Part shown: positions 2,167 through 31,406 of the stretch, piece after piece
Layout: each line of letters begins with the position of its first letter
Numbering within the stretch: position 1 is the stretch's first letter
NCBI RefSeq assembly: GCF_000150275.1
Contig: NW_002060944.1
Location: 9,330,704 to 9,362,109, forward strand
Source of the DNA: Trichoplax adhaerens
Lineage: Eukaryota; Animalia; Placozoa
DNA length: 31,406 nucleotides
Reading direction: 5' to 3'
Position numbers and translations under genes: made by a program
The notes under the pieces: model-generated
The model's database searches: none
What the model was told of the DNA's origin: nothing
Seen by the model: the letters and a program-made list of their open reading frames with translations, nothing else

Positions 2167-4129
2167 GTAAATTGTTTAAAGTAATGTTTGCTGTTGGATT
2201 AGTATGAAGGATATTATATGTGATAACGCCTGTTATCCTTGCTATGCAGTAGCTCACGGTTAAAACTTAGCCTATCTTGTCAAAGTGACGATTTTTTTCG
2301 TTCTATCATGACATCTTATTACTGTATTCTGTATTACATGCTTATGGTATAGAATAATAAATGTTTATTCTATGCATTAGCAAACTTGTAATATTTGAAA
2401 AGTTTATAGTATGATGTAAAAGTAGAATACATAAGCAGACTTGATTCCAAAGAGTAGCTGCAAGAAATAATATAATTACCCGACATTTTCCTGACTACAA
2501 CTTATTGCCGATTGTACTGTACGATTACTCTCGGAAAATCACGTTTTATTTGTTGAGTGAGTATTACTGCTTCTGATCGGCACGTTTATAGATAATGCTG
2601 CTTCTTGGTGGCTACGTCCTTAACGGTATACAGTTTTATCAAGCTGCTAAAATTGTCCATGAAAAACGCTGTACAAGAAAGGCCATTCCATCATATGAGT
2701 CATAACGTACTAATTCATGTGTTGGTAAACAAGCCTGTACTACAGTACTTGCTTGAAATGACAAAACAATAGTTTTTGTTCAGAATCATAAGTTTAGAAC
2801 CCTCATGAAATTGTCAGTTTGATAGCTTACAAGCATGATATAATTAGAAGGCATCGTTATGAAACAACGAAATCAGCAGTCACATATAATATTTGCTTAT
2901 AACCAAGTATCAAATATACGTATAGAAATCAATTTTACAGACGACAGAGAATAGACAATGCAACATTTGGGAAAGGAGAGTAAATTCATACTAATCAAAT
3001 TAGCAATCATACAGGATGTTTATGGTCAGGAAATCTCGTCAGGATATTATTAACTACTGAAGATTAAGAAAAAATTGAGATTAACAGAGGTAGTGGTTTC
3101 CAATACAATATTATTCTGCCACCAAATTTTAACCTGACTGCATTTCTCAACCTACCAAATGCTCAGATTACTCTATTTGTATTTGTAGCGTAGCCTCAAA
3201 TATAGCTTAATAGATTGTGAAAATTGTGAGTAGAAAACCATAGATTGAGAGATTGTAGAGTGATATGATTCTAATTAAGGTCAATGAGCTAAATAAGGCT
3301 AACTAGTTACAGTACTCGTAAATATTGTAGCTCTGCTTAGAAATATCTGGTTAAGGTGCTGTAACACCAATGAATGCAAAGTAAGTTAGAATAATTAACA
3401 AGGTTGATTGGTACAAGACGTAATCCCATATAATAAAGTGAATTAAGTAAATTATTTTCCTAAGATACAGAGGTTTCATTTTTTATTAAACTTACAGTAG
3501 ATTAGACACTTTATCACAATATTATAAATGTTGGTTAAATAGGATTCGAGGCATAAAATTCAGTCTCAGCTTAATATACTAGTTACTATATCTATTGAGA
3601 GTAACATTTCAAGAGTATACCAAAATTTACAGGCGTACTGAAATTTAATCGACTGATTTAAACTCGCCCTTTAATATTTTAATTCTATATAGTACAGATA
3701 CCATCATTCTAAATGAAAACATTGGAAAACGTTTTATTAGGAGAGCGAAAAAAAGAGTTACTGAGTGTGTATATAGATATTAAGATATTGCTTATGTCGA
3801 TGACTATCATCTCGGTGATGGCAATGAAAATATTTTTGACTGCAACTTTAATTATAAATATCGTTGTTTGAATTATTTAGAGATGGAAAATATAAATATT
3901 GCAACACGTATATCTGTATAGTTATATCTAGATTAAATTTTAATTAAAGTTTCAGCCTGCAAGATAAACATTATTTACTTGCTGTACTTATAAATAATTG
4001 TTTCAGAAAAGCAAAGAAAATGATAATGGTATTTATAACATTATGTATTGGAATAGGAACTAAACTATTCGGCTAATAGGGTACGAGTATCATGCCGTTG
4101 ATCACGAGTATTCTTAATTAATAGCTTTG

Positions 4130-5282
4130 CTAGATAGAATATATGGCTTCAAACCATAAATTAGTTGACGTTTCGTCATTCTGATTACATCGGAAGTCAA
4201 GATTGGCACTACTTGAGATGAAATAGCTGAATAGATGCCTTATTTTAGTTAATTCGGCATAATTGCCATCTATAAACGTTATTCCACAAGTTTTAGTTTC
4301 GTAACCACGCTACGTAAGGATGTAATAGAAAAATTGCTGATAATAAAATCTGCAGTCTACACTGCCTGATCCCGGTATGTTAGCGTAGTCGACCAACTGA
4401 CAACGTTAAAATCTCCAGTAGGGAAATCAAAGTTTGCAAATTGACCTCGTACATAATCTCGACAATCAAGTGGTACTGAATCGAAATTACTTGTAAGCCT
4501 TCAGGGAGTTATTCCTGTTAAATCTCGTATTTCTTCCATCCGACTCTTCGACATGCGATAACTAGACCAGTTAGGATTAAACTCATCAATTGGATTATAG
4601 TAGTTATAGCCTAGTATTTCATATGGCTTCATCATCTTATTCCTGTCCTACCATGAAACAACAAGGGTGTACAGTTAATGTACACATATTCTTCCTCCGA
4701 CATAAAGTTGCGGTAGACATGATACGGGCGATCACGTTGTCAAAGACCAAATACTTCCCATTTTAACATAGCCGACACATCGTAAATCATTGAGTACCGT
4801 ATAATATAATTGTCACTGCAAAATTAAGTTGACTTCATATTTATCTATACCGAAGATAGACCAACAACAATGGATGGCTTAAATATCTGTGCATAACATG
4901 CATCAAGTCACTGGAAATGAATTAAAATTTATTTATTTCTGTACGACAGATTTTCATACAGAAGTATTATAAATAAGACTATGATTTACTGCTAATAATA
5001 TTTTATAGTATATGCTCTTTTATTGTATACAACATCAAAATTGATTAAAACTATCGCAATTTGCAAGATTATTACTGATAATATATGTTGATTAAGTTTG
5101 ATATATAATCCTGAAAGATATTTGAGCTAGGCTACATTTACTGTAGTGGTATTCAGGTTAGTCAACTTTATCTTCTGAATAGGTCTCTGACATTAAAGTA
5201 GAAATGATCTTATGATATACGTATATTTCATGAACTTCTGCAGCGACAAAGATAGCAATAAGATTAGCGTCCAAAGTTTCAT
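4130..5282 (-). pseudogene. Decayed gene for a secreted protein with an unnamed Cys/Trp-containing domain (copy A)
   Basis: A frameshifted signal-peptide-like start MKLWTLI(L)IAIFVAAEVH begins at 5282. The domain reads ...YNPIDEFNPNWSSYRMSKSRMEEIRDLTGITP*RLTSNFDSVPLDCRDYVRGQFANFDF...CQLVDYANI...LDFRCNQNDETSTNLWFEA, with in-frame stops and frameshifts. It is clearly homologous to 13183-13818 and 12086-12417. Confidence 0.7.
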
Positions 5283-9175: not shown

Positions 9176-10156
9176 CTAATTGGCTAGATTGTGCATCATC
9201 TCGGTTAAAAATTCAGTACTAACATCGGTATCAGTGCCGTCACTTGAAATTGCTAAGAAACCAAATATATCTGTATCAGTATCGTTATTAGAATTGCTTA
9301 AAGATACATATGTATGATTGCTAGAACTACTATCATCGTTGCTTGAAGTTATTGAAGACGTGGCAGACTTTGAGTAGCTTGAAGATTCATTATCTGTATT
9401 TCTGGTATAGTATTTCCTTTTTTCTCCATAAAAGATATCAGTTTCGGTATCCTGGTCACAGCAATCCGTCTGATTATCAACCTTAACAAAAACAAACTCT
9501 CTTAACCTATTCGCGGCCAGTGCATTTTCTCTACTTTTTGTTTTTCGATGGCAATAACCAGGATACCTTTCAGGCCCAAAAGATCTTTTAGCACATAAGC
9601 TATAACTATTAGATTCTGCTGCAGCAGTAATATTATAAATATACCCTTGGTAAAATGCCCATTTTTCCTCCGTTTGCGCTAGAGTAATATGAATTCTGCC
9701 TCCTTTATCCTGTACTTTAGATGATGATTCAAAGAATCGCTTGAGTATCAGAGGCAAAGTTTGTTCTCGATAACCTGATCCATCATGAGGGCAATTCCAG
9801 TGGATACGATCAAATTTTTCATTTTTTGTTTGCGAATGCTCATGGATTTTCTCTGCGTCTAGGCCCAAAATTACTGTTACTCCACGACTTTTTAATCCTT
9901 CGATGCGACGGCAAAACTTGCTACAAAATTCACGTTTATAATGCTGGCCATTTTTTTTATCACAATAACCACATGACATTTCATTGCGTTCATTTAGAGG
10001 ATTAATTTCTGAGGCAGTAATAGATTCCCCTAAATTTGGATGGTTACCTTTATGCTTCTTGAGCAATGACCAAATACCGCGAAAAGTATTTTCTCCGACA
10101 AATAGTCTCTTTTTATGATTTCCGCTACATTTGCGGTTTTTTGACTTTGCGGCCAT
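9176..10156 (-). CDS. DUF2431 / BMT5-like (rRNA uridine-N3 methyltransferase-like) domain protein, 326 aa, intronless, with a Ser/Asp-rich tail
   Basis: Motifs LFVGENTF, GVTVILGLDAEKI, FDRIHWNCPHDG, FFESSSKVQDKGGRIHITL, YNITAAA and FGPERYPGY follow the order of the DUF2431 consensus as I recall it (LLVGEGDFSF; GVDAT; FDRIIFNFPH; FF...GEIHVTL; WNI..LA; F....YPGY). It is the only long ORF in the window. Confidence 0.85.
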   Translation of the reverse strand: MAAKSKNRKCSGNHKKRLFVGENTFRGIWSLLKKHKGNHPNLGESITASEINPLNERNEMSCGYCDKKNGQHYKREFCSKFCRRIEGLKSRGVTVILGLDAEKIHEHSQTKNEKFDRIHWNCPHDGSGYREQTLPLILKRFFESSSKVQDKGGRIHITLAQTEEKWAFYQGYIYNITAAAESNSYSLCAKRSFGPERYPGYCHRKTKSRENALAANRLREFVFVKVDNQTDCCDQDTETDIFYGEKRKYYTRNTDNESSSYSKSATSSITSSNDDSSSSNHTYVSLSNSNNDTDTDIFGFLAISSDGTDTDVSTEFLTEMMHNLAN

Positions 10157-17232: not shown

Positions 17233-19706
17233 ATGGGAACGAAGCTATTGTTAGTTCTTTGAAGCACATCATTGGAGGGATGGGAAATTTTCGTGTCCCT
17301 TGGGGATGATTACTTTGTATTTCCTCAGGTAGATTGTATTCTAGAATGACATTTATAGGAATAGACTTTCGGTAAAATCTCAAATTCGAACATTTCGCAA
17401 AGTCTGAAGAGTCATTACTTTTTCAAAGAAAACTCAAAGGTGAAAAAAATATTCACAGGTACATTTAATCCTTCTGTAAGGCGGTTAAACATTGATAAAG
17501 TATTGTAATCTTTTTTGAAATAAACACTGACAGTAAAGTTTAAAAGATCAGTTATTGGGTAATTATAAAAGCTCTACTTATCTGCATAAGTGTATAAACT
17601 TTAGCGAGATTATTTTTTTATTTTTCGAAAAATAGCTCGTAAGATTTCAGTCTCTACTGAACCGATTCTTCGAGAAAAATAGCGTGCTTTGTTCTAAACA
17701 ATCTTTATAAGACACCTGCATAGATAATATAATTTAATAATCTATAAATTGCCGGGATTATGGTTAAGATTTCAATTCTCAAAATTAATAGCGTAGATTT
17801 TAACCCTGAAGGCATACTTTAACTATTCCATTAGTAGCAACAGGTTACCACTGATACTCTCATCAACTCTCTTACTCTATGCATCATAAATAGTCTTCAG
17901 TGTTGGTAAATTTGATATTCTTTATATCCATAACATATTCTTTGAAGGGCGCATTTACTTGTACGATATCTAAATCAGTCCTACATAGTATTCATTAGAA
18001 AATATGTTAGGAAAGAGACTATGTTCCTTTGATAGGTGCAATAAGAAGGAAATTAGGGTATTGTAGTAGTCAAGAGGAACATCGTTGTTTCGGAAACGCT
18101 TTCTCTACTTCTTGGTATAGATCTAAATATCACTGCAGTGAATTAGCATAAAGTTGGGCTTACTTGCTACTCTAGTTGATTTTAAATGATCTCATAATTA
18201 TAATTATTTGTATCTTTTGTGAATAAGATAAATGAATGCAATAATCTTGATTTAGTAAGATTTATTGAGATTCCACGAACTATAGCTTTATTCACTATCG
18301 CATCGAAATGCGATTGCATTTTTGTTAGCTATCAATCACAACAGTACAGCTTGATAGCACATTAAATGAGATCACGGTTATACTATCTATTACTACTACT
18401 ACTGCATATCATAACAAGGGTTGTTTCTTTTGTGAAGGATCGAGGCTTCACAATGCAGCCTTGTGACGATCTTCCTATTTGACTACTTTCTCTATAAGAT
18501 CTCCAATTTTCCTCTGAAGACCTTTCGTAGAGGAAACTTACTTATTCTGACTTCGTAATTTAGAGTCAACAAGTAGCAATGTAAGTCGAGGCACTTGACT
18601 AGCAAGGACTTTTAAGCCTAGGAGAGGCTATTGCTTACTGCTACGCCTTCAGGTGGAACTCAAGTTAACAACTTCATATTCATATCTTGAATTGATCCAG
18701 CTTCAATCCGAATTAAGAGCAAAATTCTAGAACTTCGGGCTTTAGCTAGCTATGTCAGTGCTTTAAGTTTAACGCTGATCACATTAATCGTTTTTCAACA
18801 GCCGGAATTCGGGTTTTAGCCGTAACATTTATACTCTTGTCTCAGTCACACAGGATACGGGCAAAAAGCATCCTGCATTTCACGATTCAGTATAGACTAG
18901 TGCAAACTCCCGTCGCTTTGCTGACGGTTTACGATAATGTGCTCATTTAACAGATAGTATTACCATTTGATAGACCTGTCAGATGTAATACTATATACAG
19001 TGTCAGTCAGTAATAGTACGGTTAAGACTGTTTTTGTGTGTTTGCGCTAATTCGATAATACCTAAAGTTAGTACGTTATAACTCGCTACTGTCACAAGTT
19101 ACATAATAATACTTGTGATTGAATAATTATAGTATTCTACAAATGTAACATACACTTGTTCAGTCTACGTGTTAATGGTGGATTGTACTGCGTACATTAG
19201 CGAATTCACTGTTTCACAAACTTGTAATTATAATGCGTTGTAAAAGTCAACGGCGTACGTATATAAGCCGCCACTTTTCAATACAATAAAGAGAGAGCAG
19301 AGTTAGTAGTCAGTTTTACAATAACTTCAATTACGTGTTTAATTTCTTGTCTCTACGCTAAGTGAGAGTGGTACGAACTTTCAATACAGTTGTTAGTATT
19401 AACTCTAGATAGTAATACACAACTGTTACGAAGCGTAGCTCCGTAAATTATAAAATAAGTAATAATAATTGATTAACCCGGGTTGTTTACCGTTTTGGTA
19501 GACAACCGTAGGGCATTAATACTGGTTGTTTACAATTATTATAAACGGAGCAATCAACAAAGGTTTAATTATATCTAGCTGGTTATAATATTGCTTAATA
19601 TAGGATTACCTTATGGGAGCGCACTGCTCTTGCAATTAATTACTCATATTGGTGCTGAGCTCATGCTCATCGATTGACTCATTAATTGGTTGCTATTCAT
19701 TAGTGT
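17233..19706 (+). repeat. Segment duplicated near-identically at 28913-31406 (copy 1)
   Basis: 17233-18308 aligns to 28913-29991 and 18817-19706 aligns to 30521-31405, with only scattered substitutions and small indels. The intervening ~510 bp matches the 529-N gap. Confidence 0.95.
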
Positions 19707-20884
19707 TGTTTACAAACTGAGCCCATACTAAGTGGTATTAATTGTCTGGGAGTATCTACCTAAAGTAACATATACAAATTGTGGAGGGAGCAACTTCCTA
19801 GTATGCCCCACAGATGAGTGGGGATGGTATAAAGACCGAGCGAATTATCACTCGCTAGTAGTAGTTGTTCCGGACTAGGATAATCTAGTAGAGACAAGAA
19901 ATTGGATGGCCGAATAAAAAGTACCAGTGGTTGGAGAGAAACCTTAGTAGTTGTGTAACTGTGTGGAAAGAGTTAGTTTTCACTTAGTAGAAGACTTCCA
20001 AGTCAGTGGAAGACTTACATAATTACTCTAGCACTTGATATAAACGAGTCATAAGAGGGATTTGCGACAACACTAGGCAACAATCTTCTCAATTAAGACC
20101 AAGTTCAGAGCGGGCTTCGTAACAGGCGGATTAGTATTAAAATGTATCCGCTCATCTGAATAAACCATAAAAGGCTTGTACTACTGCTAGTGCAAAAGCA
20201 AGGATAAAACTTACGAAAACCAATGCAGGGTGAATTAATGTAGTCTATACTTTACCATAAGTATAACAATGGGCTTCATACTTGTCACAGTCATCAAAAT
20301 AACTTATATGGATGTGTAATTTATGATAACATTTGGTTTTAAACTATTTAGAAGTATGAACTACTACTTTAGGAATGGTTATTGTTAGTATGTTGGTAGC
20401 ATAGTAAATATGTTTATAACTACTGAAAGAGTATATAAGAAGGACTGCGATCAATAAAAAGTGATTCAGGTTAAGGCTAAGTTGTGTGATAGTTTTATAT
20501 CGTACACTGTGTGGAGCGAGTTAGTACTTCGCAAGGATTCCAGTTACTATATCGTAGGCTAGGGAAGTAGTTCTGCGGATGAACGTAAAGTTTATTATAA
20601 GTACGGTATTGTTTTCTTGTGTCGCAAGGGTAGTTGTGGCAATACTCTATTCTGTTATGAATAGTGATAATAATCAGTAAAACCACTCACCTATTGCACT
20701 TATACTGGTTTTAGAAACGAAAAATCAGTTTTTATAACGTAAACGTATCAATTTAGTGACAATAATAAGCATAGAATAAAAGTTGCATTATTACCGAAGA
20801 ATTTGGGTAACTACGCGTGTTGCAGTACTGAGTTTAAATTAACCACAAATTTTCAACTTCGATCTTATTATTGAAGATTCAGCA

Positions 20885-21085
20885 ATGAAAACTAAGGTTG
20901 CTTTGGTTTCCATTTTATTCCTCGCTGTCGTTGTGGTAGAATGCAACGAAATAGAAGTTTCACTAGATGAGATAGATGAACCAATGATGGAATCGCATCT
21001 TGCAGATAAAGAATTGAATATCATGAACTGTAAGAATAACATCAATAAAGAAGATGCACTGGAGAAATCTATGGATGAGCTGAAT
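20885..21085 (+). CDS. Exon 1: signal peptide and acidic pro-segment (67 codons)
   Basis: The ATG is in a good context (GCAATGA). A basic n-region MKTK and hydrophobic h-region VALVSILFLAVVVV end at a V-E-C cleavage pattern, followed by a D/E-rich segment. A consensus donor AAT|GTGAGT follows. Confidence 0.85.
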
Positions 21086-24000
21086 GTGAGTATATATGCT
21101 TTTAGCATCAATTTCGTTATACCTTACCATTAGCAACTAGCCTACCGTTCAGAAATATTACGTCGTACTTCTCCTTGCAGTCGTAAGCTGCATGATAAAA
21201 ATCGTAGTTGAAGAGATCTCTATTCCTTAAATTATGGTAATTAATCGCTGCCTGGTCTTTAACTGCAAACTAATTTCTGTTTTGTGCAAGAATAAAACGT
21301 CGTTCGTGATATCTTATATGCTTACATGTTAGAAATTCGGCATCGTCGCTGATTTAGAAAGTATACTTAGTCAGATTAATGTAAGCGTATTATACTGTAG
21401 TCCAAATTACAAGTACGCGTATATGTTGCGTGGTGATGCTTTCATAGTCGGTAGCATGAATTACGCTATCGAACTTCAAGCCTTACCTAATTTGAATAAG
21501 TGAGAGGAGGCTTAAAAATATTTAACAATGGAATAGCTATATTGGAAATACTATATTTGAAGAATCATACTCTAGTGAAGGATAATAAATAGACAAGAGC
21601 TGTTTATTTGTAAGGCAAGTCCTATACAAACCAGAATAACTCGATTACAAAAGTACTAAAAATAGTTATCTTTACTGTTCCAAGCTGCGTGAGTATTAGG
21701 TGAGGTAAAGTGTAATTTAAGTCAGCAGATTACTTAAAGGCTTTTACTTTATGTTCTCTTGTTACAAAGATGAATTTGTGACACCTGATTGTGTCAGATC
21801 TAGTTGCGTTAAATATACTTTATTAAATATATTTTATAACTGTTATCGATTTCGATTCTAATTTTTAAAATTTAAACTTTCCGCTTTTATTTGGAAAATA
21901 CGCATTTGCTGTTCATATTGCGGACTGATAGTAATAGTAGTTAAGCAAATAAGATTGATGTTATGATATAAATTTTCTATCGTCATAAATTTATGAAATC
22001 AATATCAAGTTTTCATAGCAAATAATTAAGCAAATAACTCAGTACAATGTTTATCAAAAGATTAGCCTAATTATTACTAAAGTATCAGTGATGTCACTTA
22101 AATTATCTACTATTCTATGTACAGTATGTACCTACGTATTTATATATCTAGATTTTATAAAATATATGTAGGCACACGAATTACTAAGTAATTTTCTTAA
22201 ATTCACGTATCTATGCAATCCATATCGACTTCTTTGGAAAATATAAATCGAATTAAATAGCCCGTAAGTTAATACGTATTTGGATCATATTTACATCAAA
22301 TTTGTTCAATATTGTACTTAATTGAAAGTAATTCATAATTTACCTGCTAATGTCGATCTATATACGTAATATATTGAAAATAATGGCAATTGTGTTTAAG
22401 CAAATCAAAACTATTTATGGCGTAGCTAATTTATAAGTTCAAATTTTTTGATAAAATATACAGTTGACTAAATATAAAATGATTCTTTACTTGCTCTATA
22501 ATGCTTTCACGTTTTTGCATCTAAATGGCTATAAAATGTGGCCTCTTCGCTAATACGAATCAATACTACATAGCGCGTAAGTTATTCACTAGTGGATTTT
22601 ATTAATAAAATAGGTATAGTTATAGTTTAATTATTTTAATTAAAAATGATAAATCCAACAGTGTATTTAAATCACTCTTATTTTGATCTTTGGTATGTAC
22701 TTATACGTTTATATATTACTAAGTAATTTTCTTCAATTAACATGTTTATGCAATGGATACCGAATCCTTCGGCAAATCCTAATCGAATTAAATAGCCTGT
22801 AAGTTTACATTTGCATTTGGATTAGAGTTGTATAGTATTTGACTGAATTTATTATCATCAATAACTTACTTTTAAACGTTCGTACTTCTACAGAACTAAT
22901 CAAAAAATAATAATAACTGATTTAAAAAGATGAATTACTTATATATTTAATTTTAAACAGTTAATAGCTTATTCAAAGATAGTAAGTAGTTTCATGTACC
23001 TGTATTTAGCTACTGCATTCTAATTTATGCATTTACAACCATCGGTATCTAGTTGTGCATTTACGTATGTGTTACTAATTAAAGAAATATTTTTCCAAAT
23101 TCACATATTCATGCCATTGATAACGATTGCTGTGGCAATTCTAAATCAAACCAAATAGCAAGTAAGTTTATATTTATGTTTTGACAAGATTAAAATTTGT
23201 ACGGTGTTCAACTAATTTGAAATACTTTAAACATACTTGTTTGTCCGTACTTCTTCATGATTTATTGAAAATAATCATTTTTGAAATTGTGATTCACTTA
23301 CATAATTTATTTTTAAATAGTTAACGTTTATTTAAAAATTATAAACAATTTTTATATTCTCGTATTTTAAACACTTAATTTTAAAACTACTGTATTTATG
23401 ACCATCGATGAGCACTTGTGCATTCATGTATAACAAAGCGACTTTCTTAAATTTATATATCCATGTGATCAACACGGACTTCTTTGGAAAATCTAAATCG
23501 AACTATGTAGATCGTGAGTTCATATTTGTTCACATTTCATTTATGCAGTATTTGAATTAATTTATAAAATAATGAGAGCATATTTTTAAAATATCTAAAT
23601 ATCGTGTTCAAAATAATAAAAGCATTTATATATGTGAATCATTTATATAATTAATTTTTAAAACAGTTTACAGCTTTTGAATTGATAAATAAATAATTAT
23701 ATTCCCGTACTTTAACGACTGTATTTAAATTACGTATCATTATGATCATCGATGAGTACTTGTGCATTAATAGGTTACTAAGTACAGTAATGCTTTCTTA
23801 AATTTACATATTCATGTATGCGATATCGAATCCTTTAATAAATCTCAATCGAACCAAATAGAAAGTAAGTGCATATTTATATTTTGTTTGGATTAACTTT
23901 ACACAGTAATTGCAATCTAATCTGTAAATATCCGTATTTTTATTTAATCACATTTACAAATATCAAATTACTTACGTAATCAATTTTGAATTAGTTTACG

Positions 24001-27000
24001 ATTATAGAAGATAATAAACAATTTTACCCACTTTTAATAACTATTTAAAATTACTTGCATTTATGATCATCGGAATGTACTCGTAAAATTATGATTTACT
24101 AATTAATTTTAATGATTAATTTTCTTGAATTCTTATATCTTTGCAATCAATATTTACTCATTTGGTGAATCTAAATCGGATTACATAGTTCGTAAGTTCA
24201 TATTTGTATTTTGTTTTGATCAAAATTTGTACAGTATTTGACGGAAGCGAAATAATTAATGAATATCTTATAAATATTCGTACTAATATACGTCTTGCTG
24301 AAGATAATATTAACTAGGTTTGCAAATGTGGATCACTTATATAATTAGTTTTTCAAAGTAGTATATGGCTTTCGAATATATAAAAAATTTCAATATACTT
24401 TAACTACTGCTTTTAAATCATGTCCGTTTATCATTATGATCAGTATTTACTCGTGTATTTATAGTTTGTCAGTTGTCATGGACTAGTCTCCTGATCAGGG
24501 TGAAGTAAAGTATTCTGCTCTTTTAAGATGCTGCTATCAACTACCACTCTAATTTCTGCCTAGGACTACCATACTATACTGCTGTCACAGAGACAAACTA
24601 CACAAACTCAAGCTATTACTCTATTTCAACAACTGATTACAGCTATTTCTACTCGTAAAGCTACGTAAACTGCTAACAACAAACATGTATTTATAATTAT
24701 AAAAGAATCTCAAAAGTTTAGTCAACCTGACCTATAAAGGCGAAATTCACCACCACATTTGTGCAATGCTTTATCTATACTACTAATCACGATTTATTTA
24801 CACCGTGATAGAATTACTCAGAAATTTTCTTAAATTTTTATGTCTATGTAATCGATATCGACTCATTTGGTAAATCTAAATCGAACTAAATAGCATGTAG
24901 GTCTAGAAATGTTTGCATTTTGAAGATAATCAAAAATTTTATATACTTTAACTACATTATCTGTATCACATATATTTATCCTCATTGTCAGTGTATACCC
25001 ATGCAGCTATGCTTTACTAAGTAATATTTTTATTTTTTCATATGAATTCAATTGATATCGAATCATTTGGCGAATTGGAATCGAAATAAAATAGACCGTA
25101 AGTTTACATTTACGTTTTATGTTGATTAAATTTTTGCATTGTTTAGTTGAAATAATAAAACAAGTTTGCAAATACCAATATAATTAAGTTTCTAAGTAGT
25201 TTACAGCTTTTTGAATATAGTAAAGAGTTTTAGCTAATATAGTTCAACGGTTGTATTCCAATTGCATACATTAATCATCATAATCACTAGGTATTTTTGT
25301 TTTCATCTAATAATAAGAAATTTTCTTAAATTCTTCTATATATATATTCAATCGGTATCGACATATTTTGCAAATTTAAATTGGAAAAATAGCGTGTAAG
25401 TTTATATTTGTGTTTAATTTGATTGACTTAGTACAATACTTGATGGAAATAGTTGATAACTTATTTGTGAATGATCATATTTTCTATATACCTTACTAAA
25501 AGTAATAAAATTGTGTTTTTAAATGTTAATCACTTATGTAGTTAATTTTCAAGGCACTTTACGACTATTAAGATATAATGAATATTTGAATATGCAGTAA
25601 TTACTGATTTGAATGACAAGTATTTATGATCATTATCAATGTGCATTTATGTATTTATGCATTTTTAAGTAATTTTCTTAAATTCTATTATCTATACAAT
25701 CGATATCGAATCATTTGGAAAATTAAATCGGATTAAATAGTTCGTAAGTTTGTAGTTGTATTTCATTTTGATTGAATTAAAGGTTTATTTAACTGAAATA
25801 AAAATAATTAATAACTTGTATGCCAATTTTTGCACTCCTACATACCTTACTAAAGATTTTAACTATGTTTGGAAATATCAATCACTTACATAGTTAACTT
25901 TCAAAGTAGCTTGCTATATGACAAACAATTTTAGTATATTTTAACTTTTGTAAATTTCATGTATTTTATCATCATTATCACTGTGTACTTGTGTTTTCAT
26001 ACATTACTAAGCAAATTTTTTTTTAAATCTGATATCTATGCAATCGACATCAACTCATTCGGAAAATTTACTGTGAACTATGTATAGTTCGTAAGTTTAC
26101 GTTGTTTTTCATTAAATTTGCTCAGTATTTGACTTAATTGAAAATATTTAAAGTATTGCTTGTAAATGTCCTTATTTCTACATAACTGACTAAGAATAAT
26201 AACAAATACAGTTGCAAATATCATTTAGCTACACAGAATAATTAATTTTAAAGACGTTCATAGCGTTTTAGAAGAGAACTATATTTTAGATATACTTTAA
26301 CTACAGTAATCAAATTATATGTATTTATCATTATTATCAGTATAGACTTGTATATTTCTATAGTACTAAGTAATTTTCTTAAATTTTTATATTTATGCAA
26401 TCGATATCGACTCGTTTGGAAAATTTAAATTGGACTAAATAGTTCGTAAGTTCATAGTTTTGTTTTGTTTTGTTTTGTTTTAATTAAATTTATAAAAAGT
26501 CTGAATGAACTTATAATAGTTAATAACTTGCTTGAAAATGTTCGTATTCCTACTTGCCTTACTAGAATTAATAATAACTTCGTTTTATAATTAACTTTTA
26601 AAGAACTTTACGGCTTCTAGATCACTATAAACATTTTAATATACTTTAGATTTCGTATTTAAATTATATATATTTAAAATCATCATCAGTGTTTACTTGG
26701 GGATTTATGTATTGCTAAGTGATTTTCTTAAATTCTTATATCTACCTTATCAATACTAATTTATTTGGCAAATTTAAATCGGACTAAAACAGAATGTAAG
26801 TTTATATTTGTGTTTCAATTCTGATTAACTTTGTACAGTATTTGACTAAAATGAAATAATTAATTACTCACTTGTAAATATTCGCATTTCTACATACCTT
26901 ACTTAAAATAATAAAAACTACTTCTAAAAATGCCTATCACTACTATAATTAATTCTTAAAGTAGTTTGTGGCTTTTGAATGTAATAAACAGTTTGAGTAA

Positions 27001-28124
27001 ACTATTGTATTTAAATTATCATCATTATCAGTGCTTACTTTTACATTTATGTATTATTAAGTAATTTTCTTTAATTCTTTTATCTATGCAATCAATATCG
27101 ACTCATTCTTTTAATCTAATCCGAATCAAATAGGCTGTAAGTTTATATCTGTGTATTATTTTGATTAATTTTGGAAATTATTTAACTAAAAAGAAAATAA
27201 TTATTAATTTACTTATAAATATTCGTATTTCTACATTCCTTCTTGTTGTGAGATCCCAAATTAGCTCAGGATAAAAATTATTAGATTTTATATAGAAATC
27301 ATAGAATTTGTTGTAATAATTCAATAAAATGTAGACAGAAGATAGATATTCTTTGTTATAGGTAGAATAATCTGGGCTATGTGATACAGTAAAATTTCAC
27401 TAGGAATACTACAGCATTTATAGTTCTAATATTATTTTAGACAGTCCTACTGAATCTTATTGATTCCAATAACTAATACTTTTATCTTTGTGAATTCTTT
27501 CATCTATAATTAGAAAAATGAACTTTAGCTGAGATAGCATTACATAATTATTATTATTACCCAATATAAGAAATTACAATTTGAACGTAATAAACATCTT
27601 TGCATAATTTTTTCTATGTTAATCTCTGAATCGGCCTTCACCATTCGTTTCGAAATTGGCCAACTTTTTAGGGAGTAAGTTTGCAATGCGGTCGAATTTA
27701 AAATGTTTTAAATGCATAACTATAATTAAAAAAATGAACTTTAGCTATGATAGCATTACATAATTATTATTATTACCCAATACAGGAAATTACTATTTGA
27801 ACATAATAAACGTCTTGCATTATTTTTTTATATGTTAATCTCTGAATTGGCCTTCACCATTCGATTCGAAATTGGCCAACTTATAGGGAGTAAGTTTGCA
27901 ATACGATCGAATTTAAAATGTTTTAAATGCATAACAATAAGTATATACAATTAAAAGAGGAATTAGATTCTAGCGCTTCTAAGATAGATAAAAATAACTT
28001 TATATCTATGAAGTTCTTACTAAATCTTACTTCTAATACCAACATTTATATTTTTGTTAATTTTTTTTCTGTACACCTTCGCATCAACCCTTAGAAAAGG
28101 AAGAAGAAATCAATGCAAATCTAG
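20885..28124 (+). CDS. Predicted micro-exon gene encoding a secreted prepro-peptide: exon 1 (signal peptide + acidic pro-region), 17 three-nucleotide exons, 30-nt last coding exon
   Basis: Exon 1 (20885-21085) ends in phase 0 at GTGAGT. Seventeen AG|NNN|GT cassettes follow between 22261 and 27889, then exon 28095-28124. Phase-0 product: MKTKVALVSILFLAVVVVEC-NEIEVSLDEIDE...KSMDELN-(SQIN/IN?)-PRPQIKFHTRFFFNAGG-KRKKKSMQI*. No transcript evidence is available to me. Confidence 0.7.
22080..27240 (+). repeat. Diverged tandem array of ~350-bp intron/micro-exon units (15 cassettes)
   Basis: Recurring core: TTACTAAGTAATTTTCTTAAATTC..ATATCTATGCAATCGATATCGACTCATTTGGAAAATCTAAATCGAACTAAATAG-NNN-GTAAGTTTATATTTG. 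Triplets are at 22261 CCC, 22574 CGC (divergent flank), 22796 CCT, 23159 CAA, 23511 ATC, 23862 AAA, 24189 TTC, 24894 CAT, 25095 ACC, 25393 CGT, 25741 TTC, 26088 TTC, 26443 TTC, 26793 AAT and 27134 GCT. Confidence 0.92.
24474..24811. mobile_element. Solo LTR-like insertion within one array intron
   Basis: About 338 bp of non-array sequence with imperfect inverted ends TGTCATGG...CCGTGATA. It explains the 705-bp spacing between the TTC (24189) and CAT (24894) cassettes. Confidence 0.55.
27504..27935 (+). repeat. Recent ~215-bp tandem duplication, each unit carrying a GGA micro-exon (27672-27674, 27887-27889)
   Basis: Two highly similar units with ...ATTGGCCAACTT(T/A)TAG|GGA|GTAAGTTTGCAAT. The unit sequence is unrelated to the main array. 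Confidence 0.9.
28095..28124 (+). CDS. 30-nt exon downstream of the micro-exon array (KRKKKSMQI* in phase 0)
   Basis: A poly-T tract and CCCTTAG acceptor lie upstream and a TAG|GTAAGA donor downstream. A further acceptor (TTTTTACTTTGTAG) lies at 28462. Confidence 0.65.
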   Translation, partial: KRKKKSMQI

Positions 28125-28862
28125 GTAAGAATTTGATTTATATTGGCATATTCTGTAATCCAGCTAATCTGGTACCATTTAAAGGTAACCGACAAAGCTA
28201 TGAATAGCCTATTAAAGCATTGTATCATACGAACTGTAAGAGTATGTAAAATACTATATAATATTGCACAACTCATTCAAAGAAATCTAGTACGGATTCA
28301 TTACTCTGCGGAGGCGAAGGATGTTCGTATTTCGTAGTAAATGTTCTAGTGTAACATTGTCACAGCTACTATGCTAAGATAGCAATCAGTTACAATAATC
28401 AGTCATGAAGTATTCTATTAAAGCTAATCTCAAATAATTATCATTGCTTTTTTACTTTGTAGAAAAACAGCAAACCAATGGCTTTCAGTTGAAAAGTAAA
28501 ATTGCAAAAATGATCGATATTTGCTGATTCGAGAATTCTTGTTGCCATGTAGTGCATATTAGGTTGTATTGACAGTTACATTTGATATACCGTGGTCGGA
28601 TTTCTAATAATAGAAAATATTACCGTAATGCTAATATTAGACGATGGCTAATTATTATATTGGAAATTGTTGATGACTATTACTAGTTACTTAAGTATGG
28701 TACAACATTTATATGACGCGATGTACTGCAATTGTAAAGACGCACAACACCTTTACGGTATTGGACAATTGTAGAAAAGTAATGATATTTCAAACAGATT
28801 GGTTCGTACGGTTAAATAGATTGGTTATCTATTTAAGGAAATGTGTTCTATTAGATGACTAA

Positions 28863-28912: not shown

Positions 28913-31406
28913 ATGGGACGAAGTTATTGTTAGTTCTTTGAAGCCATCATTGGAGGGATGGGAAATTTTCGTGTCCCTTGGGGATGATTACTTTGTATTT
29001 CCTCAGGTACATTGTATTCTAGAATGACATTTATAGGAATAGACTTTCGGTAAAATCTCAAATTCGAACGTTTCGCAAAGTCTGAAGAGTCATTACTTTT
29101 TCAAAGAAAACTCAAAGGTGAAAAAAATATTCACAGGTACATTTAATCCTTCCTACGTAAGGCGGTTAAACATTGATAAAGTATTGTAATCTTTTTTGAA
29201 ATAAACACTGATAGTAAAGTTTAAAAGATCAGTTATTGGGTAATTATAAAAGCTCTACTTATCTGCATAAGTGCATAAACTTTAGCGAGATTATTTCTTT
29301 ATTTTCGAAAAAATAGCTCGTAAGATTTCAGTCTCTACTGAACCGATTCTTCGAGAAAAATAGCGTGCTTTGTCCTAAAAAATCTTTATAAGACACCTGC
29401 ATAGATAATATAATTTAATAATCTATAAATTGCCGGGATTATGGTTAAGATTTCAATTCTCAAAATTAATAGCGTAGATTTTAACCCTGAAGGCATACTT
29501 TAACTATTCCATTAGTAGCAACAGGTTACCACTGATACTCTCATCAACTCTCTTACTCTATGCATCATAAATAGTCTTCAGTGTTGGTAAATTTGATATT
29601 CTTTATATCCATAACATATTCTTTGAAGGGCGCATTTACTTGTACGATATCTAAATCAGTCCTACATAGTATTCATTAGAAAATATGTTAGGAAAGAAAC
29701 TGTGTTTCTTTGATAGGTGCAATAAGAAAGGGAAATTAGGGTATTGTAGTAGTCAAGAGGAACATCGTTGTTTCGGAAACGCTTTCTCTACTTCTTGGTA
29801 TAGAACTAAATATCACTGCAGTGAATTAGCGTAAAGTTGGGCTTACTTGCTACTCTAGTTGATTTTAAATGATCTCATAATTATAATTATTTGTATCTTT
29901 TGCGAATAAGATAAATGAATGCAATAATCTTGATTTAGTAAGATTTATTGAGATTCCACGAACTATAGCTTTACTCTCTATCGCATCGAAANNNNNNNNN
30001 NNNNNNNNNNNNNNNNNNNNNNNNNNNNNNNNNNNNNNNNNNNNNNNNNNNNNNNNNNNNNNNNNNNNNNNNNNNNNNNNNNNNNNNNNNNNNNNNNNNN
30101 NNNNNNNNNNNNNNNNNNNNNNNNNNNNNNNNNNNNNNNNNNNNNNNNNNNNNNNNNNNNNNNNNNNNNNNNNNNNNNNNNNNNNNNNNNNNNNNNNNNN
30201 NNNNNNNNNNNNNNNNNNNNNNNNNNNNNNNNNNNNNNNNNNNNNNNNNNNNNNNNNNNNNNNNNNNNNNNNNNNNNNNNNNNNNNNNNNNNNNNNNNNN
30301 NNNNNNNNNNNNNNNNNNNNNNNNNNNNNNNNNNNNNNNNNNNNNNNNNNNNNNNNNNNNNNNNNNNNNNNNNNNNNNNNNNNNNNNNNNNNNNNNNNNN
30401 NNNNNNNNNNNNNNNNNNNNNNNNNNNNNNNNNNNNNNNNNNNNNNNNNNNNNNNNNNNNNNNNNNNNNNNNNNNNNNNNNNNNNNNNNNNNNNNNNNNN
30501 NNNNNNNNNNNNNNNNNNNNTAGCCGTAACATTTATACTCTTGTCTCAGTCACACAGGATACGGGCAAAAAGCATCCTGCATTTCACGATTCAGTATAGA
30601 CTAGTGCAAACTCCCGTCGCTTTGCTGACGGTTTACGATAATGTGCTCATTTAACAGATAGTATTACCATTTGATAGACCTGTCAGATACTATATACAGT
30701 GTCAGTCAGTAATAGTACGGTTAAGACTGTTTTTGTGTGTTTGCGCTAATTCGATAATACCTAAAGTTAGTACGTTATAACTCGCTACTGTCACAAGTTA
30801 CATAATAATACTTGTGATTGAATAATTATAGTATTCTACAAATGTAACATACACTTGTTCATTCTACGTGTTAATGGTGGATTGTACTGCGTACACTAGC
30901 GAATTCACTGTTACACAAACTTGTAATTATTATGCGTCGTAAAAGTCAACGGTGTACGTATATAAGCCGCCACTTTTCAATACAATAAAGAGAGAGCAGA
31001 GTTAGTAGTCAGTTTTACAATAACTTCAATTACGTGTTTAATTTCTTGTCTCTATGCTAAGTGAGAGTAGCACGAACTTTCAATACAGTTGTTAGTATTA
31101 ACTCTAGATAGTAATACACAACTGTTACGAAGCATAGCTCCGTAAATTATAAAATAAGTAATAATAATTGATTAACCCGGGTTGTTTACCGTTTTGGTAG
31201 ACAACCATAGGGCATTAATACTGGTTGTTTACAATTATTATAAATGGAGCAATCGACAAAGGTTTAATTATATCTAGCTGGTTATAATATTGCTTAATAT
31301 AGGATTACCGTATGGGAGCGCACTGCTCTTGCAATTAATTACTCATATTGGTGCTGAGCCCATGCTCATCGATTGACTCATTAATTGGTTACTATTCATT
31401 AGTGTA
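28913..31406 (+). repeat. Copy 2 of the 17233-19706 segment (contains N gap 29992-30520)
   Basis: Direct, near-identical match to 17233-18308 and 18817-19706. Confidence 0.95.

Follow-up and report, generated by a model that had tools for sequence, protein, structure and literature searches.

An array of single-codon exons in a predicted secreted-peptide gene of Trichoplax adhaerens, joined in genomic order in RNA contigs

Exons of three bases are the practical lower limit for exons that keep the reading frame, and they are mostly known as isolated, regulated cassettes. The neural microexons of bilaterians, which are 3-27 nucleotides (nt) long and keep the frame, depend on the eMIC of SRRM4/SRRM3, rely on intronic sequence just ahead of the acceptor that includes a nearby UGC motif, and occur as single regulated cassettes in large conserved proteins. 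At recursive splice sites, or ratchet points (AG-GTAAGT), a 3′ splice site adjoins a strong 5′ splice site, and the intron is removed stepwise with nothing left in the mRNA. The mini-exons of troponin T and Dscam are known cases in which short exons, duplicated into arrays and accompanied by conserved elements in their introns, give alternative products. The micro-exon genes (MEGs) of schistosomes begin with a signal-peptide exon, followed by symmetric micro-exons of 3-81 bp, in multiples of three, that are separated by much longer introns; their products are secreted, lineage-specific and devoid of recognisable domains, and variants arise by exon skipping (PMC10526429). Here we analyzed a stretch of 31,406 nt of the placozoan Trichoplax adhaerens, which we call the window (contig NW_002060944.1, C1413 in our numbering, positions 9330704-9362109), and conclude with good confidence that it carries a real, expressed protein-coding gene whose mature-peptide region is encoded one codon per exon, made up of a 5′ untranslated region (UTR) exon, a 201-nt exon, 17 exons of 3 nt and a short terminal exon.

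The array stands out by its splice-site pattern. The window holds 16 matches to the motif AGNNNGTAAGT, each on the plus strand and between 22259 and 27895, against a chance expectation of 1.36 +/- 1.23 (maximum 5) in dinucleotide shuffles, and the rest of the 31.4 kb holds no further exact match on either strand. The match at 22977-22987 (AG-ATA-GTAAGT, triplet 22979-22981, plus strand) is a decoy that has no repeat block upstream and sits at another place in the repeat unit, and its ATA is left out of the RNA, where CCT is joined directly to CAA (CCTCAA). Adding the variant donors GTGAGT (23514) and GTAGGT (24897) leads to 17 triplets, with perfect GTAAGT donors in 15 of the 17. Reading along the plus strand, they are CCC (P, 22261-22263), CGC (R, 22574-22576), CCT (P, 22796-22798), CAA (Q, 23159-23161), ATC (I, 23511-23513, with the GTGAGT donor), AAA (K, 23862-23864), TTC (F, 24189-24191), CAT (H, 24894-24896, with the weak donor GTAGGT), ACC (T, 25095-25097), CGT (R, 25393-25395), three times TTC (F, 25741-25743, 26088-26090 and 26443-26445), AAT (N, 26793-26795), GCT (A, 27134-27136) and twice GGA (G, 27672-27674 and 27887-27889), numbered here as microexons 1 to 17, and their phase-0 translation is PRPQIKFHTRFFFNAGG. 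The array introns measure 198-702 nt, mostly 338-360 nt, and an array of diverged tandem repeat units of about 350 nt, in which each triplet keeps a fixed position, spans 22146-27148 (plus strand); the intron upstream of microexon 2 falls outside the common repeat type, and microexon 16 belongs to a different, 216-nt repeat unit.

The evidence that these triplets are genuine exons, as the original prediction from the bare sequence had proposed, comes from RNA. Four sequencing runs (X1, X5, X8 and X9) were checked, all in the form of assembled contigs, from which assembly drops rare variants. Coverage of the locus in X1 is even and unspliced, as in DNA, whereas in X5, X8 and X9 depth is high over exon 1 and low or nil over the introns, with joints that have GT..AG borders, which marks these runs as RNA; given the even, unspliced coverage in X1, the joined forms belong to RNA only. 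In X5 (an 876-nt contig with a depth of 219, H1-like) and in X9 (H2-like, that is, of the Trichoplax sp. H2 type), which come from two independent studies, position 21085 continues straight into CCCCGCCCTCAAATCAAATTCCATACCCGT, 30 letters that spell microexons 1-10 in genomic order, from CCC to CGT. Other contigs join 22576 to 23159 with CCT in between (microexons 2>3>4), 22576 to 23511 with CCTCAA in between (2>3>4>5), 23864 to 24189 (6>7) and 24896 to 25095 (8>9). Loose contig ends add CGCCCTCAAATCAAATTC, which follows 22263 where intron 1 is still present (1>2...>7), CCCCGCCCTCAAATCAAA before 24189 in X9 (1...>6>7) and TTCAATGC after 26090 in X9 (12>13>14>15, that is, TTC AAT and the first two letters, GC, of microexon 15), and further loose ends lie at microexon 2, before 23511 in X5 and, in mRNA, at microexon 8. 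Microexons 1-10 and 12-15 are in this way verified by RNA; microexon 11 is called from sequence, with an X9 contig that starts exactly at 25741, and microexons 16 and 17 are predicted.

The allele at 20954 is of the window type in X5 and X8 and of the H2 type in X1 and X9; as the alleles of X5/X8 and X9 differ, both lineages, and three or more studies, show the splicing. Intron removal follows no fixed order, since some contigs retain intron 1 with exons 1-7 already joined and another shows the converse, with the first five introns out and the intron after microexon 5 (ATC) kept. No contig of the four runs skips a cassette, and full inclusion is the only form seen, although contigs are blind to minor isoforms; the microexons are apparently spliced constitutively and in genomic order.

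Upstream of the array, the start-codon exon (20877-21085, plus strand, donor GTGAGT at 21086) encodes 67 amino acids from the ATG at 20885, and the matches of the X5, X8 and X9 contigs stop exactly at 21085. Its coding part (20885-21085), about 1.2 kb upstream of the array, measures 201 nt, which puts the triplets in phase 0 and bears out the phase that had been proposed for them. The product starts with MKTK and a 15-residue hydrophobic run, a signal-peptide-like N-terminus (MKTKVALVSILFLAVVVVEC) as judged by inspection only, and continues as an acidic propiece. Ahead of 20875, the X5 mRNA contig has another 99 letters that end in GAAAACTCAAAGGTGAAAAAAATATTCAC, and the same string lies at 17428-17456, which places the 5′ UTR exon at 17360-17458 (plus strand, start approximate), in front of a GT donor at 17459. 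The exon 1 protein is 99% identical to ‘hypothetical protein TrispH2_010977, partial’ of Trichoplax sp. H2, a model that ends at the same residue, and its annotators evidently missed the remainder of the gene. Searches of 5.8 billion and 1.8 billion proteins matched only this H2 ortholog, Pfam gave nothing above cut-off for three exon-1 proteins of the family, and the Protein Atlas gave no usable match.

Downstream, a last coding exon is predicted at 28095-28124 (plus strand; acceptor AG at 28093-28094, donor GTAAGA at 28125), which reads AAA AGG AAG AAG AAA TCA ATG CAA ATC TAG, or KRKKKSMQI and a stop. H2 has the identical exon, fused there to an intron of the microexon-17 type, and the paralogous locus on contig C1402 has a homologous exon, but a degenerate one, as is its donor. 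The H2-like X9 contig extends 78 letters past exon 1, which equals 16x3+30 and gives weak, circumstantial backing to the terminal exon. The predicted C-terminus of the precursor would then be PRPQIKFHTRFFFNAGG-KRKKKSMQI. The proposed G-G-K-R-K-K-K tail is supported to the extent that this predicted exon holds, and of the interval first proposed, 22261-28100, the 17 triplets stand and the endpoint gives way to the terminal exon. A 3′ UTR exon is predicted at 28463-28550 (plus strand) from an acceptor and about 90 nt that are conserved in the C1394 and C1402 paralogs, and it runs into a dispersed repeat. Its acceptor (28463) is conventional, with a pyrimidine tract right at the AG, in contrast to the microexon acceptors, whose last 30 nt are A-rich. 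The repeat behind it (28555-28860) has at least 40 copies in the genome, at 68-78% identity.

Compared with the systems described above, MEGs appear, by analogy, to be the nearest known kind. The window gene has the signal-peptide first exon (by inspection) and very short internal exons in multiples of three (17 of 3 nt and one of 30 nt), and it differs from MEGs in that its internal array is a tandem repeat of purely one-codon exons with homologous introns, in that no sequence relation to MEG proteins and no skipping in the contigs were found, and in that its host is a free-living placozoan instead of a parasite. The 3-nt, frame-keeping exons recall the neural microexons, but here there are 17 in a row that look constitutive; moreover, no UGC enhancer of the SRRM4/eMIC type lies within about 15 nt of the acceptors, where the last 30 nt before the AG read like aaatcgaactaaatag, and the only conserved TGC stands about 50 nt upstream. 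As at recursive splice sites, an acceptor lies beside a strong donor inside a long non-coding stretch, yet three bases stay in the mRNA at each site and removal is not strictly 5′ to 3′. An array of duplicated short exons with conserved intronic elements is shared with troponin T and Dscam; unlike in Dscam, consecutive units co-occur in the mRNA and no docking/selector pairing was predicted. Full-text searches of the literature brought up neither such arrays nor this peptide, and within the papers searched an array made purely of 3-nt exons appears to be undescribed.

The repeat unit suggests how such exons could be recognised. From 5′ to 3′, it consists of TTACTAAG, a textbook branch-site motif (TACTAAG/C) about 73-80 nt before the acceptor that reads TTACTAAC in the C1394 paralog, then TAATTTTCTTAAATTC, a short pyrimidine-rich run, then ATATCTAT-GCAATCGATATCGACTCATTTGGnAAATCTAAATCGAAC-aAAT, and finally AG-NNN-GTAAGT-TTATAT, so that the conserved block can be written TTACTAAG-TAATTTTCTTAAATTC-...-GCAATCGATATCGACTCATTTGGnAAATCTAAATCGAAC-aAATAG-NNN-GTAAGTTTATAT; the block ATCGATATCGA is also part of the unit. 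Across units, the AG and GT are invariant and the remainder of the GTAAGT donor is nearly so, and pairwise identity in the three triplet columns is 0.32, 0.22 and 0.33, about random, versus a mean of 0.73 in the flanks. All 17 units have a zone free of AG before the acceptor, 69-74 nt long in 12 of them and 99-176 nt in the others, against a median of 17 nt between successive AGs in this region, and in most units of the common type this zone begins exactly at the AG of TACTAAG. Including the predicted arrays at other loci, 47 of 48 units in four arrays have at least 65 AG-free nt upstream. No consensus RNA structure was found for the conserved block (0 pairs), and no Rfam family matched between 20500 and 29000.

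Since exon definition is impossible for exons of 3 nt, each intron is presumably read on its own signals, that is, recognition would proceed intron by intron instead of by exon definition. Early recognition would be independent of the AG and would rely on a donor perfectly complementary to U1, a consensus branch motif far upstream with its pyrimidine run, and an AG-free spacer, and the first AG past the branch point would be picked as the acceptor at the second step. Such an arrangement would keep U2/U2AF at the distal branch clear of the U1 site, which lies only 3 nt beyond the acceptor; the branch points themselves are probably distal, judging from the motifs. The conserved block is the only part that can be aligned between the C1413 and C1394 arrays, and units have long terminal branches in the unit tree (0.06-0.33 changes per site); that the block alone remains alignable despite these branches suggests that some of it, at least, has been under long-term constraint. 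The spliceosome of an early-branching animal can thus cope repeatedly with acceptors and donors that lie 3 nt apart, apparently with enough efficiency to yield a well-covered mRNA, and the array offers a natural setting in which to study intron definition, AG scanning and distal branch points.

The array probably grew by tandem duplication of a unit of one intron plus one codon, followed by point changes in the triplet, so that the peptide would lengthen or shorten by one residue per unit gained or lost. Neighbouring codons are identical or alike (TTC x3 and GGA x2 in the window, with CGC x2 and CGT/CGC x4 among the runs), a pattern that agrees with units duplicating first and diverging later. 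Units 16 and 17, both GGA, form a 216-nt tandem pair that is 90% alike, and H2 is without window positions 27884-28089, that is, microexon 17 and its intron, with a clean breakpoint at CTTA. H2 therefore has 16 units and one Gly fewer (...NAG-KR instead of ...NAGG-KR), and the only triplet that differs between H1 and H2 is microexon 15, GCT>GCC, a synonymous change (A). The one-unit difference between H1 and H2 shows a route by which a peptide could gain or lose single residues through unit duplication. In the tree, units cluster by array, which points to independent expansion or to homogenisation of each array. The repeat unit in the 702-nt intron that follows microexon 7 is broken by an insert richer in GC (24440-24800); contig depth over this insert is high, loose ends at 24713 and 24745 enter other sequence in three runs, and it is probably a dispersed repeat or a transposon fragment.

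The 105.6-Mb assembly (1414 contigs) was searched for relatives, and the same build of signal peptide, acidic propiece, single-codon array and basic peptide is predicted at three or four other loci besides the one on C1413 (exon 1 20885-21085, 17 units). At C1394 (L012), exon 1 (5050-5235), 35% identical to that of the window, starts MKAYISLIALLFLAV and goes on into an acidic stretch, in phase 0, and ten predicted units (ATC CAG AGG AAA ACC CGC CAT CGT ACC AGC, giving IQRKTRHRTS) are followed by the conserved 3′ exon. At C1385 (L016), exon 1 (3261-3446) precedes 17 predicted units, WSRRRRHTGRRQTIWSA, that are far more diverged, with introns of 125-400 nt and AG-free zones of 65-115 nt. On the minus strand of C1400 (L020), a distant exon 1 is accompanied by four predicted units (CGT CGC CGT CGC), then one broken unit and an assembly gap, and C1402 (L013) has two degenerate units and the degenerate terminal exon, with an exon 1 that was not identified, no search having been made for it. 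The unit sequence model R1 found 14 units in the window and ten at C1394, besides a degenerate one at C1402 and a weak match at C1385, and a profile of three exon-1 proteins found two more loci, C1400 and C1411. An X8 contig from an intron of the C1394 paralog, with loose ends at 22183 and 22225, hints that this paralog is transcribed.

Three further places in the genome touch on this family. The exon at C1411:4733370-4733549 (plus strand; L021 1371-1550) codes for a signal peptide followed by a highly acidic propiece (MNMKLALIASLLLLAVIVNAEEEK...) and is weakly related to exon 1 of the family, and no microexon array is visible within the next 8 kb. Near-identical tandem repeats with AG-CCC-GTAAGT (C1407:2034798-2035365, minus strand, L019; period about 140) and with AG-AAA/AAC-GTAAGT (C1394:730011-730358, minus strand, L018; period 64-75) may be more single-codon arrays or plain satellites. 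They came from a double-pattern census of the genome that was not clean, as it also returned plain tandem repeats and gave four matches in the backwards control.

The product is predicted to be a secreted, strongly cationic short peptide that would be freed from an anionic propiece. The propiece has a net charge of about -10 (about 14 D/E versus 4 K, counted), the microexon-encoded part with its tail has about +8, and the paralog arrays have +4 and +6, one of them encoding RRRR. With the last exon as predicted, Gly and a dibasic pair follow each other at the end of the array (...NAGG-KR here, ...NAG-KR in H2), and C-terminal amidation at G-KR is possible; between the propiece (...MDELN) and PRPQ we found no basic processing site. 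The tripartite layout of signal peptide, anionic propiece and cationic C-terminal part is likewise that of the trichoplaxin-2 precursor, with its signal peptide, acidic propeptide and Arg/Trp/His-rich cationic C-terminus (PMC7436000), and the C1385 product WSRRRRH... resembles the WWR13HHWRR... of trichoplaxin-2 in composition. Homology between the two was not detected, in that the profile of three exon-1 sequences missed the trichoplaxin-2 locus. The gene of trichoplaxin-2, a published antimicrobial peptide (C1378:35695-35757, minus strand, L022), has an acidic upstream exon and then one ordinary exon for WW, 13 Arg and HHWRRYARIGFRAVRTVIGK up to the stop, so the idea that the 13-Arg run is microexon-encoded was rejected. 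Because the tripartite layout is common to host-defence and neuropeptide precursors, it does not decide between defence and signalling; from composition and the pattern of the family, we lean slightly towards a defence-type role, and a signalling role is possible with somewhat less weight.

The strongest alternative, put forward in the original prediction, is that the 17 cassettes are included alternatively, so that their combinations would make up a library of short peptides with amidated ends, among them RFamide-like and IFGamide-like ones. Any subset would stay in frame, as each exon is 3 nt in phase 0, and schistosome MEGs do vary their products by exon skipping (PMC10526429). An X8 contig also departs from the expected order, with CGCCTCTCAAACAC instead of CGCCCTCAAATCAA after microexon 1 (22263), and this is unexplained; the tip fits no simple skip, though, and may be a contig-tip error. 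Against a library, every interpretable junction in the four runs joins genomic neighbours, and the X5 contig runs unbroken through the microexon stretch at its depth of 219, which argues that there is no abundant alternative path. The splice sites also look constitutive instead of weak or regulated, since all but two donors are perfect and the branch motifs are near consensus. RFamide, IFGamide and FFG peptides would need skipping and so find no support, and a single dominant isoform, the outcome named in advance as speaking against the library, is what the contigs contain, although skipping at a low level or in particular cell types could escape them. We consider the library improbable. A wider form of our own reading, in which placozoans have a dedicated, tandemly duplicating ‘intron + codon’ module, with a distal branch point and an AG-free spacer, for evolving short secreted cationic peptides, read without exon definition and with subsets skipped in some cells or conditions to give a peptide family per gene, is unlikely.

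Three other explanations were considered. The peptide could be incidental to a non-coding host or regulatory device, for instance introns that each supply a small RNA, the way snoRNA host genes work, or a splicing ‘timer’, and the exons would be spacers; the conserved sequence is indeed mostly intronic and the exons have the minimal size that keeps the frame. Nevertheless, the conserved block adjoins splice sites and gave neither an Rfam match nor a consensus structure, the array continues the frame of a signal peptide and propiece, none of the triplets is a stop in the window array or in the candidate arrays elsewhere, the paralog arrays all encode basic residues, and the sole H1/H2 triplet change is synonymous, which together make such a device very unlikely. 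That the introns are copies of a mobile ‘introner’-type element inserted between codons would account for introns that are homologous and have their own splice signals, but R1 matches only arrays (24 units), one degenerate unit and the weak C1385 site, with no dispersed copies found, and the regular period and orientation, the codons shared by neighbouring units and the whole-unit difference between H1 and H2 leave it highly improbable. As for a satellite whose spliced contigs are assembly artefacts, other tandem repeats (C1407 and C1394:730k) also match AG-NNN-GTAAGT, and the backwards control of the double pattern gave four matches; the same 30-letter spliced string nonetheless recurs in independent runs and strains, next to several distinct, partly spliced contigs with GT..AG borders, and we regard this explanation as scarcely credible.

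Returning to the expressed gene with one codon per exon, several points weigh against it or parts of it. The junctions listed lack 10>11 and 15>16>17>last exon, both the 3′ exon and the last coding exon are predictions, and the runs, being contigs, give no isoform proportions. RNA support is confined to the window's array, and the microexons of the other arrays are predicted. The CTCTAAC at -18 in the C1400 array means that not all members of the family share a distal branch point, and H1 and H2 diverge by 2.5% in the conserved block just as in other intron sequence (2.5%), so that recent constraint on the whole block is not demonstrated. The paralogs are without G-KR, C1394 ending in ...HRTS-EKTS..., and at the peptide level the product is predicted from sequence alone.

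The locus also marks a blind spot of annotation, because the H2 annotation ends at exon 1 and spliced-read aligners cannot place exons of 3 nt. The peptide gene and its relatives are likely to be missing from the gene sets, single-cell atlases and peptide databases of placozoans.

Some other features of the window were recorded. A second copy of the segment 17233-19706, which belongs to the 5′ part of the locus, lies about 11.7 kb further downstream, at 28913-31406 and on into the following stretch (L014, to about 2509), with 97-98% identity, and the 5′ UTR exon (17428-17458) recurs in it at 29106-29136; this copy is interrupted by runs of N and followed by more than 9 kb of N, and it is either a tandem duplication or a haplotype or assembly artefact. 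On the plus strand, 1833-2051 is an open reading frame (ORF) of 72 amino acids, a putative cytochrome c oxidase subunit 6B. On the minus strand, 9176-10156 is an intronless ORF of 326 amino acids, and its counterpart at the H2 locus carries PF10354 (BMT5-like methyltransferase).

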